DNA of 64,000 nt. Origin: Phaeosaccion multiseriatum. Taxonomy: Eukaryota > Protista > Ochrophyta, other classes. Position 1 is the first letter of the stretch, and every line of letters starts with the position of its first letter. Below, one piece after another: positions 41,105 through 49,768 of this stretch. The notes beneath the pieces are model-generated. The model had not been told where the DNA came from. It saw only the letters and a program-made list of their open reading frames with translations, and ran no database searches. The stretch lies in NCBI GenBank assembly GCA_965112735.1, contig OZ218962.1:2604001-2668000 (forward strand). The letters run 5' to 3'. A program made the position numbers and the translations under genes.

Positions 41105-43189
41105 CTATCGTTCACTTCTTTTTCGCTTCCAAGACGGCTGCTCAGAGACGCTATCCTCACTCTCTCCATCCCCCCCCCCCTCCAGCTGAAACCCGTACTC
41201 GCCCATCAGCGTCTTTACCTCCCTGGCCATGCCCTCCAAGCAGAAAAATTCCGCTGCCTGGAGAGCCTGCTTCGCTCTAACGTCGTCGAAAAGCTTCACA
41301 CGCTCCCTCTTCTTCGTGTCTGTGCTACTCGCCGCCCCTGCTCCTCCCGTGCTGCTGCCGCCGCTCCTGCTGCTAGCGCGCCCCTCTCCCGGTCTTCTCG
41401 TCAGCATCTTCTCCACACTGCCCGTGGTCACGAACTTCACCACAGCCTCAAAGCCGTCCTCGGTAAAGTCCACACCATCATACTCCAGCTCTACACGCTT
41501 CATCTCCTTCCTGCCCTTGCTCTTTCCCTCGCTCTTTCCCTTGCTCTTCTCCCCGCCCTTGTAGCCGTGCTTCCTCGGGTCGAGCATGTTCGGAAGAATG
41601 CCTGCCGCGGAGGCCGAGCGACCTGTGGAGGTCTTCGCTCTCTCTTCCTGTCCCCCAGTGACCCTCGCCGCCAGCCGCTCCATCAAAGGGATGCTCAAGG
41701 CGTACTCCTTCTCGCCCCTCTCTCCACTGCCCCTATGCACCAGCCGAACCCGCACAGTAGTGTCATCCTTCTCATCCGCAGCACCGCTCATCGTGGAAAG
41801 ATAGTGGGTAGAAACGGTGTCCAGCCTGTCTGTAACAGCATCACGCTGCTCTATTCCTTTTCGGAAGAATGAGGCAAGGACACCCCCGAAGCCTACCTCT
41901 CCTGCCACAGCGATGGTCCTTTCGTCAACAGCAGCGCCCATCTTCAGCAGGAACCGAGCCACCTGTCCACGCGCCTCCCTTTCTCCTGGTGATATTTCCC
42001 AAGCCTTCAGTTGTTCCGACACTTTGCCTTGAGATGGCCGCATGCACGATACCAAAGGACTCTCGCCATCATCGGTGAGGGCATCGACCGAAGCGTCAGC
42101 CTCCACCAGGGGGTACACTAGCTCCATGCTGCCCAGGGCGGCCGCGATATGCAGTGCGGTGATCGAATTCTTGTCCTTGATGTGAACAGAGGCATCCGCG
42201 ACGATCAGCTCGCCGACAACGTCCACGTGGCATTTGCCGACAGCGAGCAGGAGGGGAGTGCTGCCATATGAGCTCACAGCATCAAGAGGTGCACCGCGGC
42301 GAATGAGCTCCCTCACACATCCCAACTGTCCATCGTAAGAGGCCAAGTGGAGCGGAGTCTCCGAATCGTTGTTCGTTGCATCGATCTGCAGCCCTCTTCC
42401 CACAAGAATGGGGATGCAATGCTCATTTCCGACTGACACGGCAAGGTTCAGAAGACTGTCGCCATATTCGTCCTTCACCTGCACATCTGCGCCTTTCTTG
42501 AGCAACATCGACAGAGCCTCGGCCCGCTCGGTTGGTGAGCCTCCACTCCCTTTGCAGCAGGACTGGGCAGGCGTGTCACCATCCTCATCCTTCTCAAATA
42601 CATTGGCCCCAGCTTTGAGCAACATCTCCACACACTCAGGCCTTCCATTCCAAGCCGCCAGGTGCAAGGCGTAGCTTCCCTCCCATTTGGCCCCATGCTT
42701 CATCAAGTACCAGACTATCATGGGCTGGCCGGCCAGAGCCGCAAGGCTTAGAGCTGTCCGTCCGGCATCACTCTTGATGTTGACATTCGCACCCGCCTCC
42801 ACTAGTCCCTTCACCAAGTCAAAGTTCCCCTTCCATGCAGCTTCGTGGAGAGCAGTCTCTCCTAAAGAAAAAAAAACGAGATCGCCATCTTCACTACTTC
42901 ATTTTTTTTCGTTTACTCCGCACTCCTTCAGGAGCTTGACAGCCTCCAGCATCCTCGTAACCTTCACCTCCGAGCAGCGTGTCTTCTTGCTCTTCTCAGC
43001 ATCGGCGAGGTAGTGCAGCGGACCATATCCGTTCGTCTTTAGCTTCTCGACATCGACAGTACAGAGGACGGCCTTGAGCAAGAGCAGGAGGTCTTCCTTG
43101 CTGCTGCCCCAGCCCAACGCCTCCTGCTCATTTCTCCTCTCATACCACTCCTGCACCTTCCCGGCAATCCTCTCCCGCTCCACACTCAT
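41105..43189 (-). pseudogene. Ankyrin + BTB-like paralog (copy C) with one in-frame TGA at 42899-42901
   Basis: ORFs 42899..43261 and 41105..42817 are in the same frame and together cover all of copy B. The stop lies in an A8/T9-containing divergent patch (CGVNEKK*SSEDGDLVFFSLGETAL). Confidence 0.7.
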
Positions 43190-43337
43190 CTCTGTTCTTG
43201 TAAATGACGTTAAAGAAGGAGAAAGAAGAAAGAGAAAAAGAGGAAAGAGAAAAAGAGCCATTTGTGAAGGGCCTTGGATGCAGACTCAGCTTGGCTGGCT
43301 GGGGCTATCTCTCTCTCTCTTTTTATGACCGGTTTTG

Positions 43338-43951
43338 GTGGGGCGAGATGCCCCACTCGGTGAAAGTGGGTATTTTTAGTACCCAATTTTTTTAAAAGTG
43401 GGTATTTTTAGTACAGTACCCAATATGGACCAGTAGCGCCCCTCCCCCCCCCCCTCCTTTTTTGTGTGTGTATCTCTCCCCTCCTCCTCCAAAATATACT
43501 ACGCTATGATATGACGATTTAATGGTATTACCACGATAACAATGGTATTCATATTTACAGACACACTTAGTGTCCGTCCTCAATCATGCATGGCTTACAG
43601 TAGTAGTCAAAATCGCCTTCCGCAAAACCCTTGCTGTCGCAAAACTCGACGGTGCACATGTGGTGCACGAGGTTTCCACACGCTCTTTCGGATGGGCAGA
43701 GGAACAGCTTGACTTGCGAGGGCTTAGTACAGCCATACGAGCATGTGAAGGCCATGTCTCCCTCTCTCAAGCCGCCCAACGACGGCGCTGCTGACGCGGC
43801 AGCAGCGGCAGTAGCGGCCGCAGCGGCCGCATCAGAGGCAGCAGCAGAAGCAGCATCAGAAGCAGTACCAGTACCAGTACGCTGTTTTTTTTGGGCCCCC
43901 CTTCCCCCACCCCTTCCTCCTCGTCCTCCTCCGGCTCCGCCTCCTCCTGTT

Positions 43952-43985
<34 letters not shown>

Positions 43986-46897
43986 TGCTGCTGCCACCTC
44001 CCTCCTCGTCGTCCTCTGCACCGCTATCACCTCCATCCCCCTCCTTCGACTCGTCTGCACCAGTGCCACTTTCCTTCGCCCTCGCCCGCTTCGCCCGTTT
44101 TTTCGCGTCCGCCTGCTGCGCGCTCCATAAATTATACACGGTGGTCCACACCAGCTGATTGAAGCGGCGCTTGTGAGAATCAGAACGAGACTTGATGTCA
44201 AAGGCGTCTTTGACTGCGTCAAACATGCTTCGCGCTTCTTCAAGCGTCGGCTTGTCCTTCCAGAGCCCCTTTTCTTTCGCCGCGGATTCAATCGCACCCA
44301 TCAAACAGCAAAATTTTGACATCCTTCGCTTCTCCGCCCTCCCCTGCACGTCTGCTGTCGTGAATTCTCGAAGGCGAGGAGTGCCTGTCATCCAAGCATC
44401 CCAAGCAGCGCGCACAGTGAAGCTAGGGACCTCAAAGTGCTCGGGAAGGGTATGCCACCGGCCGTTGTAGAGATACAGAGGTGGCTGATCTGCACCTGCA
44501 CAAGAAGAAGAAGAGGGCGGGGCGCTGCTCGAACCCTCACCAAGGCCCAGAGTGCCTGCCTGGTGAGCCGCGAGAAGGTCGCTGAGCCCACTCTTAGAAA
44601 AGGCTGCGTCGAGGGTCGTCTGCAGGGCCCTGCTCACACCCAGACTGGTGACAGTGCCAGAGGCCTGTGCATTCTCCTCCAGAACGTCACGGATCAGCGT
44701 CTCCAAGTCGACCTTGATCGTCTGGCCCAACACCTCAAGCTTGCCGCCTAGAGAGGCCACGCTGTCCGCCACGACTTGGAATTGCCTCAGCTGCACGACG
44801 TGGGGAGGAATCCCGGTTGCAGAAATCTCGTCCGTCTCGTCCGGATACTTCAGCACGACATGCTCTGAAAGGTCCGCCAGCAACCTTTGATCTCGGAAGA
44901 GCTGTGTCGTGAAAAGAGGGTGATTCTCCTGAAGAGTGCTGCGCAGAAAGCCGGCGTGGTACACCACACTGGCAAGACAGAATTCAGCCACCTTCCTCAA
45001 TCTCAGCGGCACGTCCCTGAAGCAGCTCACAATGGCTCCCGCGAGCACGTCTTCAATGCCCTCCTTCGCTGTGCCGTCCACCTTGAGGCGCTGAAAAAAG
45101 GGAGGAAGCAATGCAAACTCCTTCGCTGAGATGTTCGCGCCGGAGGCAGCCCGGCCCACATACTGATCTGCTGCATTGATGGGGTTGAAGTAGATGCCCT
45201 GCACGCCGGGAAGAGACCATCCCATAAGTTGCACAGCAATTGGGTTGGGAGCAGCGGACGAGCCGCTTGTGACGTGCGAGGCAGCGCCCTTGCGCCCAGA
45301 ATGAGTGCCGAGGTCCTCTGGAGTCAGCCCCATGCCTTCCAAAATGGACGAGTTCGCCGCCGCCGTACGTCTGACGAAGCCGCAATACCTATCGTACTGA
45401 TTGTTGCCAGCGAACAGCGCGTTCTTCTCAAAACCAAAGCTCAGGAGGTAAACACCAAGCGCGAGGACGGGGCAGATCTCCGGCATGATTGGATTCGCGT
45501 AGACGTGGCGAGGATGTCGGGCCTTCTCTCCCAGCTGATCGCCCTTTTGCTTCCCAAAATAGACGCAGAGCGCGTCCCCCTTCCACTCGAGATGATCGAG
45601 ACAAATCTCCACACAGTTGGTGGCGCGGCACATCAGATTCCAGGAGAGAACGAGGAAGGGGTGGCCAAAGGCGCCCTGTCTGTGCCCGTTCTCACAGACT
45701 GCCGAGCTCAGCATTGCTGCGATGTACACAAGCGAAGGAAACAGTGGCAACCAAAGACGGCGTCAGGGCTAGGAAGTGAGTGGGGGGCATTCAATGCATC
45801 AGCCACTTGTCTCCACCCACTCCACTAGTTTCCACTGTCCACTGACTCCACACAGCTGGGAATTTACCTTTGGCAAGAGCGCGGTAGAGAGCGAACGGCA
45901 TGGGAGCCTTCCCTTCTCTGACTTCGACATTTCCCTCCTGCTTCTCTCCTGCGATCGTCCTCTTCAGCCCCTTGGTGAGCGTCGCAAGGTCGCTTTGCAA
46001 TTTGCGGTGCTGTTCCTCCTGATGGTAGTCTCTGTACAGATTGAAGAGTGCAGAGCGTTTCGACTGTGCACCGGCCTTGGATAAGCCCTTCGGCCCCTTC
46101 TTGACTTCAAGCAGCCACCCGAAGAACGCGTCGGCTGTCAGCAGATGGAACAGCAAAGGGTGCGGCGCCCGAGGTGCTTGGATCAAGTGTGCCTTCACCC
46201 GCTTCGTCCACTGCGCCTCAGCCTTCTTCTTGGCCTTTGCTTGGGCTTTCGCTGCTCTCGACACCTCAGCCGGCGTCTGCTGTGCCGCTGCAGTGGCACC
46301 ACCCGCTCCGCCAGGTGCGGCGGCTGCTGCGGCTGCTGCTGCTCTCCTCTGTGCTTCCTCCTCTTCCCCATCTTCCCCGTCTTCCTCCTCTTCCCCTTCC
46401 GGTGGAGCAAATGCTGTCCTGAAGTCAGGGTCCAGAAGCTCCGGGTGCTTGCGGAAGAGGTATCGGATCAGCATGGTGGAGGCGCATGCATATCCACTTC
46501 TCGAGCGTGGGGCGATGGTGTTGTTTCGGAGGTTCTGAATCTGCTGCTGCTCTGCAGTAAGCGGTGCTTCTTCCCCCTCTGCTGCTGGTGCTTCCGGAAC
46601 CGTAGCAACAGCGACGTCAGCCATGGTATGCTCTGTTCTCCTGCAAATTCACGTGGGAGATGCCCCTCCCACCACTGGCATCAGCTGTTACAGCCGGGTA
46701 TCGTCCGCGCAGCCGCTGCTCCTCTTACATAGCTGCCCTGTGCAAATATGCTGATGCTGTGAATGAATAAAAATCCATGTGGGGAGGGGGGGGAGAATGC
46801 CCCACAACCAAAAAATATTGGATAAAAAACTTGAAAAACGAGCATTTGTGGCCCATAAAATATCCAAAACCATAATTTCGTGGGGCAGGTGCCCCAC
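43338..46897 (-). mobile_element. Crypton-type tyrosine-recombinase DNA transposon, ~3.56 kb, apparently intact
   Basis: Single tyrosine-recombinase gene with AT-rich ends. Each end carries a GTGGGGC-N-GCCCCAC palindrome (43338-43356 and 46880-46897). The boundaries are inferred. Confidence 0.72.
43567..46624 (-). CDS. Crypton tyrosine recombinase, 968 aa, 2 exons (46624-45868 and 45716-43567), with a C-terminal PHD-like Cys/His finger
   Basis: Phase-1 GT-AG intron (AAAG|gtaaat...cgcag|CAATG). Catalytic residues R (WNLMCRATN), K (KQKGDQ), HxxR (GTHSGRKGAA), W (GWS) and Y (VQGIY), plus the Crypton-type blocks RHVYANP..PEICPVLAL, DQYVGR, FALLPPFF and SATGIPPHV. Confidence 0.88.
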
Positions 46898-46947
46898 ATC
46901 ACGGTACTATTAGACATACGGACTACAGAGAACTTTTTCTCTCTCAA

Positions 46948-49768
<2,821 letters not shown>

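Follow-up and report, generated by a model that had tools for sequence, protein, structure and literature searches.

The Crypton literature recognises these transposons by a short sequence that is shared by the element and its target and is not a duplication (PMC3212892, PMC13465315, PMC9977147). The CryptonS elements carry terminal direct repeats of 5-6 bp, mostly TATGG (PMC3212892), and the active Chlamydomonas element CryptonF-1_cRei uses a near-identical short target (CACCG into CAYCG) and is excised cleanly (PMC9977147). In the Crypton literature, activity was not observed until 2023, and cis-acting sequences have been defined for none of the families. The locus described here lies within a 64,000-nucleotide stretch of contig OZ218962.1 of the ochrophyte Phaeosaccion multiseriatum (the window), in which positions 43319-46934 almost certainly represent a single copy of a Crypton that was active recently. 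Cryptons are DNA transposons, and this one has a tyrosine recombinase as its sole gene. The element is a new family of a known Crypton kind. Taken as a whole, the account that we lean towards is that of a young Crypton with a CT/6-bp core at its true ends and with two matched palindromes, located inside those ends, that would serve as accessory arm-type sites.

Copies, true ends and crossover core

The genome assembly that was examined (67.1 Mb, 22 contigs) contains 33 copies of the element, which exhibit 98.9-100% pairwise identity and fall into two or three subfamilies. Alignment of the copies with their flanks gives sharp boundaries, from 43319 to 46934 in the window. On the left, similarity begins at CTATTGATGACC, 19 nt before the palindrome GTGGGGC-gagat-GCCCCAC (43338-43356), and on the right it continues for 37 nt beyond the palindrome GTGGGGC-aggt-GCCCCAC (46880-46897), with GAGAACT as the final bases. 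A preliminary description of this DNA, made from the sequence alone, had reported both palindromes at these positions, where they are indeed present; it had also taken them to bracket the element, and in this it erred. The palindromes are subterminal because the copy boundaries lie outside them on both sides, and the ends of the element with the CT junction are placed at 43319 and 46934 with high confidence.

The junction can be read from a 40-bp host motif (start CTTTATTGACTTAATAGG, end GAAACTGAAAGTG) with 322 occurrences, often followed by a TG microsatellite. Several copies of the element are inserted at the same base of this motif, and at least three of these insertions are independent, because their outer flanks differ. 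The unoccupied motif reads ..agaaaCTgaaagtg.. and the occupied motif reads ..agaaa-CTATTG...GAGAA-CT-gaaagtg... Six empty copies of the motif were compared with the filled ones, and a single CT is present when the motif is empty and a CT at both junctions when it is filled. This change from one CT to two at insertion is a Crypton-type terminal repeat shared with the target.

The crossover core, or overlap, is probably 6 bp wide with only CT obligatory, because four features converge on this width: the dyad of the target, two targets that contain the whole core, the replacement of the core in the window copy and a duplication at the edge of the core. The 30 independent targets follow the degenerate profile W-A-W[CTNNNN]N-T-W (W being A or T), which is dyad-symmetric about a 6-bp spacer. 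Position -2 is occupied by A in 26 of the 30 (p 1e-11), between a W at -3 and a W at -1. CT is followed by four bases that are free to vary, and beyond these the second position is T in 20 of the 30 (p 3e-5) and the third position is W. The preferences A(-2) and T(+2) mirror each other about the centre of the spacer, and the element's own junction, GAA[CTATTG]ATG, obeys both. The left linker of 13 nt (43325-43337, ATGACCGGTTTTG), which runs from the core to the left palindrome and is presumed to be the right half-site of the core in a circular form, has T as its second base, in agreement with the target preference. The full CTATTG is present in two of 29 targets (P 0.008), and these are the copies with perfect 6-bp terminal repeats. 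One copy carries a 4-bp duplication that starts exactly at the right edge of the core.

Both ends could be read in 31 copies, of which 30 have CTATTG as the left core; the window copy has CTTTTT at both ends. Its left core (43319-43324), bounded by reference to the other copies, differs from the usual sequence by changes at 43321 and 43324 that turn ATTG into TTTT, matching the four bases after the right CT. Within the right core (46933-46938), which is joined to the right palindrome by a 35-nt linker ending in GAGAA (46898-46932), the CT at 46933-46934 is common to all copies and the TTTT is derived from the target. The two changes in the left core are joined by only one other, at 45375, to make three differences in 3.6 kb between the window copy and its nearest relative.

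No sequence other than CT is found without exception at both junctions, which might also point to a target-site duplication of 2 bp, produced by a cut-and-paste transposase whose gene lies elsewhere, with the recombinase as cargo or in a role limited to resolution. This explanation is barely credible, as the true ends carry no terminal inverted repeats and the 3.6-kb element contains no other gene, its long open reading frames (ORFs) being the two recombinase exons only. It also leaves unexplained the 6-bp repeats of three copies, the dyad target with its 6-bp spacing and the exact four-base replacement of the core in the window copy, and short repeats shared with the target are a known Crypton signature (PMC3212892, PMC9977147). 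Neither long terminal repeats nor a reverse transcriptase were found in the element, which is accordingly multi-copy and recombinase-only, as expected of a Crypton.

A search of the genome with this recombinase did not reveal any diverged paralogue. There is likewise no family of non-autonomous derivatives in it; apart from a single solo fragment of the right end, the searches turned up just two old relics. The solo fragment (L061, C14:1474863-1474940) is 79 bp long and retains the right palindrome intact, and one frameshifted copy within the same group of fragments and relics (L058-L061) is without the left arm. The window copy itself sits between two divergently oriented ORFs (intervals 43187-43319 and 46934-46950), about 130 bp upstream of the likely start of an ankyrin-repeat gene on the minus strand and 14 bp before an ORF that starts at 46948 and bears a very long CAG/polyQ run.

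The recombinase gene and its product

Two long minus-strand ORFs (45791-46624 and 43567-45750) lie between the palindromes and fit two exons of one gene encoding a protein of about 968 amino acids. Exon 1 (45868-46624, minus strand) would encode an N-terminal SAM-like domain of the core-binding type, which aligns with the N-termini of homologues. The predicted intron (45717-45867, minus strand) is 151 nt long, is bounded by GT..AG and was placed by the spacing of the homologues. Exon 2 (43567-45716, minus strand, with the stop codon at 43567-43569) would encode the catalytic domain and a conserved, clade-specific C-terminal region, together with a linker of low complexity and a Cys/His finger. 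GT..AG is kept in all 29 aligned copies, and the spliced frame is open over 957-974 codons in 20 of them. Searches and structure models were run exon by exon, and the splice model was checked by reading the frame from the coordinates.

Pfam analysis of both exons gave no match to an integrase catalytic domain, and a 13-sequence profile searched against Protein Data Bank (PDB) sequences returned nothing relevant. As the sequence libraries provided no catalytic-domain match, it took structure prediction to reveal the fold. Exon 1 exhibited a weak match to PF13495 (E 0.058), a family also matched by four of 13 homologues. When residues 1-289 of exon 2 were modelled with AlphaFold on the basis of 75 homologues, the model had a predicted local distance difference test score (pLDDT) of 92 and a predicted template modelling score (pTM) of 0.92. 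The top structural match provided by VIA-align is Flp (Z 14.9, 223 residues aligned, root-mean-square deviation 4.2), followed by Ndc10 (13.0), Cre (12.0), XerH (11.6), the Tn1549 integrase (6emz, Z 10.7) and lambda Int (9.9), and the highest-ranking entries consist entirely of recombinases, Ndc10 and type IB topoisomerases. The protein is thus confidently modelled with a tyrosine-recombinase catalytic fold, as in Cre, Flp and lambda Int.

The R-K-H-R-W-Y catalytic set is present in canonical order and spacing, as WNLMCR, a beta-hairpin K, HSGRKG, GW and a Tyr located 34 residues after the second Arg, and in an alignment of the 75 homologues these motifs are invariant or at least 90% conserved. 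The codons of the first Arg (45625-45627), the His (45301-45303), the second Arg (45292-45294) and the Tyr (45190-45192), all on the minus strand, were checked in the window. The preliminary description had proposed a Crypton with an intact eukaryotic recombinase, and this is borne out by the near-identical copies, the modelled fold and the conserved catalytic motifs. Position 45375, the sole private substitution of the window copy outside the core, encodes Val in place of the Leu that is found in the other copies and in most homologues.

The homologues exhibit at most 39% identity over the 727-aa exon-2 product and at most 49% over the catalytic region. Those with names come from Phytophthora, Nothophytophthora, Chaetoceros and the cryptophyte Hanusia, and many others are metagenome proteins. 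The C-terminal region (43981-44490) aligns with that of the Phytophthora, Chaetoceros and other homologues and is modelled as a long helical hairpin followed by a small confident domain (pLDDT >90, model residues 120-262). No GCR1_C domain was identified by Pfam in the exons of the element or in the homologues. The Cys/His finger at the C-terminus is an addition that is absent from the 13 aligned homologues. Judged by its oomycete and diatom homologues only, the element appears to be related to the CryptonS-type elements of stramenopiles.

The subterminal palindromes

The pattern GTGGGGC-N3-7-GCCCCAC has only two matches in the window, compared with none in any of 100 shuffles. Across the genome there are 70 matches, compared with one for the reversed control, and 32 of these are in a left-end context and 33 in a right-end context of the Crypton family. 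The palindromes belong to the element, and the common promoter motif that the preliminary description had named as a possible objection is not what they are, as about 65 of the 70 matches lie within the family. The left palindrome is exact in 32 copies and is predicted to form a hairpin; around the right palindrome, imperfect arms extend to 46869-46905. Both palindromes carry asymmetric spacers (gagat and aggt) in the same orientation, and both termini fold into sets of hairpins far better than shuffled sequences do (z -3.2 and -4.6). The alignment of copies and empty sites that had been suggested as a check gives a divided answer, in that the copies end elsewhere than proposed, yet keep the palindromes.

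A matched pair of element-specific palindromes in direct orientation, with asymmetric spacers and near both ends, is what would be expected if they were lox/FRT-like sites with the exchange taking place inside them and the 8-bp TGCCCCAC as the crossover repeat, as the preliminary description had it. We consider this very improbable. The 19 nt and 37 nt beyond the palindromes are common to all copies up to a sharp boundary, and the empty and filled sites put the junction at CT, 13 and 35 bp outside the palindromes. The exchange accordingly maps to the CT/6-bp core at 43319-43324 and 46933-46938 and not to loxP-, FRT- or att-like palindromic sites. Canonical recombination sites have arms of 11-13 bp and a spacer of 6-8 bp (PMC3212892), and the 7-bp arms and 4-5-bp spacers found here are too short for such a site. 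A footprint composed of the left end, one palindrome and the right end was not found in the 67 Mb. The shared TGCCCCAC, which had been put forward as a terminal direct repeat, turns out to be the common arm of the palindromes, and on its own it is not rare in the window (8 matches vs 4.6 expected).

The reading that we prefer for the palindromes, and to which we give about an even chance, is that they are family-specific candidate accessory binding sites that mark and pair the ends of the element. The relatives of the element offer a comparison. Their loci were found with an eight-sequence alignment, and 23 metagenome loci with a full ORF and flanks were examined. In four of these 23 distant relatives, the gene is flanked upstream and downstream by palindromes that have identical arms, compared with an expectation of 0.02 from shuffled flanks and with 4 of 506 for mismatched real flanks. 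Two of the four cases are trivial, as the elements there stand in tandem. The remaining two are L106, with GCAGGAT arms and 5-nt spacers at -135 and +241 and a second upstream copy, and L087, with GGTTCC arms and 5-nt spacers at -319 and +182. An initial check of three relatives had found no flanking palindromes.

The chief alternative is that the palindromes are cis-regulatory or transcript-structure elements of the recombinase gene, namely an upstream promoter element and a 3' hairpin, without any role in recombination. Their positions are suitable for this, as the start codon is preceded at 255 bp by the right palindrome and the stop codon is followed at 210 bp by the left palindrome, and stable hairpins are predicted for both on the mRNA strand. 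We nevertheless judge it unlikely, given that promoter and terminator signals are not normally identical in sequence, that the motif is nearly absent from the other genes of the host and that the same motif stands on both sides of the gene here and, with other arms, in two distant relatives.

A role as accessory sites, and the wider account of which it is part, must be set against a number of findings that weigh the other way. The conservation of the palindromes within the family is weak evidence: the ten fixed differences between subfamilies in the 310-bp right end include none within the palindrome, and the substitutions in the first 118 bp of the left end are in the core only, and this carries little weight because the copies are so young and similar. 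The left palindrome has decayed or lost half of its length in the two old relics, which are 76-85% identical to the element. Matching palindromes are absent from 19 of the 23 relatives, and the enrichment that remains after the tandem cases are removed is modest (P ~0.014). The C-terminal region retrieved generic coiled coils or nothing when compared with solved structures, with no match to a DNA-binding fold. The Arg located two residues before the active-site Trp, which is at least 90% conserved in the relatives (RAGW), is missing here (LMGW, ~45214-45225), yet the family has clearly multiplied. The 6-bp width of the core rests on three copies and on the symmetry of the target profile, and the core in the circle junction is not surrounded by an extended inverted repeat of the kind found at canonical sites. 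A circle or head-to-tail junction is absent from the assembly, which leaves excision as something that we infer, and a left-end search of the Joint Genome Institute (JGI) metagenomes found no copy of the element.

Some of these same findings suit a neutral explanation, in which the palindromes and the other terminal inverted repeats persist because the family expanded too recently to have lost them. Identity of 98.9-100% makes conservation within the family uninformative, the old relics exhibit no special preservation, and 19 of the 23 relatives have nothing comparable. This explanation is improbable all the same, as chance would hardly produce two exact palindromes with the same 7-bp arms within 3.6 kb, the structure of both termini is significant, and the pattern recurs in relatives.

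Further repeats lie inside the palindromes at both ends, and those claimed earlier (a third TGCCCCAC, a duplicated 20-mer and TGG(G/A)TA / TA(C/T)CCA motifs) were all recovered. At the left end, a 32-bp unit is repeated in tandem in about 1.6 copies (43363-43422) and contains two TGGGTA..TACCCA inverted repeats; the 20-mer duplicated exactly at 43363-43382 and 43395-43414 is part of this unit, which is present only once in one copy of the element. The corresponding motifs of the right end are TGGATA/TATCCA, where the left end has TGGGTA/TACCCA. The right end also contains an imperfect third palindrome, TGTGGGG-N15-CCCCACA (46778-46806), whose right arm is the third TGCCCCAC at 46798-46805, and an inverted repeat of TATTGGATA and TATCCAAAA with a 36-nt spacer (46816-46869). 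In the relative L095, which is 41% identical, the intergenic interval 2480-2580 contains GTGGGGCGAA twice, 31 bp apart and adjoining ACCGGTTT, words that are also found at the left end of the present element. The local alignment of the non-coding sequences is no better than that of shuffles, and the shared words are possibly due to chance.

Transposition and comparison with known systems

Excision as a circle is the accepted model for the Crypton class. The present element would be excised as a circle with the junction GAGAA-CTATTG-ATGACC, in which both palindromes flank the core, 54 bp apart; the junction with a single palindrome that had been expected earlier does not follow from the mapped ends. 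The circle junction would then recombine with a target, only the first two bases of the core needing to match, and the other four would form a mismatched overlap that is nearly always resolved for one strand. The palindromes may be the arm-type sites by which the recombinase recognises and pairs both ends, and not the sites that are cut. In these respects the element behaves as the Goodwin model for Cryptons predicts.

The junctions are one-sided to an extreme degree. In 28 copies the element's ATTG is found at the left junction and target bases at the right junction, and no copy has the reverse arrangement, an outcome with a chance of ~4e-9 if the two classes were equal. Equal classes are expected if both strand pairs are exchanged and the mismatched overlap is segregated at replication. 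The 28:0 bias instead fits a single strand exchange that is completed by replication, or a strongly biased mismatch repair. Integration of integron cassettes and of CTX phage proceeds by one strand exchange that is completed by replication. If it applies here, such a mode would help to explain the growth of the family to 33 copies, and an increase in copies despite a cut-and-paste model is a point that has been raised for the Chlamydomonas element (PMC9977147). A broader proposal, which we offer tentatively and as rather doubtful, is that of a Crypton clade with a two-tier site, composed of a degenerate 6-bp core and family-specific palindromes for a dedicated recombinase domain, that integrates replicatively by exchange of a single strand pair. 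If true, it would explain both the 28:0 bias and the presence of 33 copies in a cut-and-paste class.

Head-to-tail tandem copies of related Cryptons are present in the metagenome contigs L095, L123, L125 and L107. The tandem of L095 (1-4627) has a period of 2432 bp with copies that are 99.9% identical, L123 and L125 have periods of ~2.9-3.2 kb, and L107 carries a 380-bp direct repeat 3.1 kb apart. These arrangements fit the integration of a circle into the core of a resident copy.

To our knowledge, Crypton transposition has never been studied biochemically, and three of the features described here have no earlier description that we found in the Crypton literature: the pair of matched palindromes in subterminal position, the target profile whose dyad symmetry sets the overlap at 6 bp with only two obligatory bases, and the one-sided resolution of junctions. 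The family is unusually tractable: intact and near-identical copies are numerous, the ends are known to the base, an empty site has been verified, the spacing of both cleavage points can be read from the target profile, and two candidate accessory sites are at hand. With such a family it can be tested directly by what rules a eukaryotic transposon with a tyrosine recombinase selects DNA and is joined to it. The prospects for use as a tool are sobering, as the enzyme is nearer to a loose integrase than to Cre or Flp; it is an integrase of loose specificity, and not a strict tool, because its target is degenerate (roughly A-W-CT).

Among described elements, the CryptonS group of oomycetes and diatoms (Kojima and Jurka 2011, PMC3212892) is likewise recombinase-only, without GCR1_C and without terminal inverted repeats at the true ends, its conserved C-terminal region matches that of the present element, and the length of its terminal repeats (5-6 bp) fits the 6-bp core. 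The core here is CTATTG, however, and not the common TATGG, only CT is always repeated and obligatorily shared with the target, and matched subterminal palindromes are not described for the group. The copies are also numerous for a Crypton. CryptonF-1_cRei (Lopez-Cortegano et al. 2023, PMC9977147) resembles the present element in that its target resembles its own terminus, in its reported proximity to genes, a location shared by the window copy, and in a copy number that rises despite a cut-and-paste model. It differs in belonging to another Crypton group and in its longer obligatory match (four of five bases), and its activity was observed, whereas that of the present family is deduced from the identity of its copies.

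The integrases of Tn916 and Tn1549 also tolerate a non-homologous crossover region, favour AT-rich targets and pass through a circular intermediate with the crossover bases in the joint. They are bacterial and exhibit no sequence relatedness to the present recombinase (~12% identity in the structural alignment with 6emz), and the coupling sequences of Tn916 travel with the element from the old site, while in the present family it is nearly always the four bases of the element itself that persist. The lambda-type integrases, Cre-loxP and Flp-FRT share the same catalytic fold, with Flp as the best structural match, as well as an overlap with symmetric flanking contacts, here probably 6 bp wide, and by analogy with them the palindromes of the present element could act as arm-type accessory sites. 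Cre-loxP and Flp-FRT differ from it in their inverted core arms of 11-13 bp, which have no counterpart here, where the target is degenerate.

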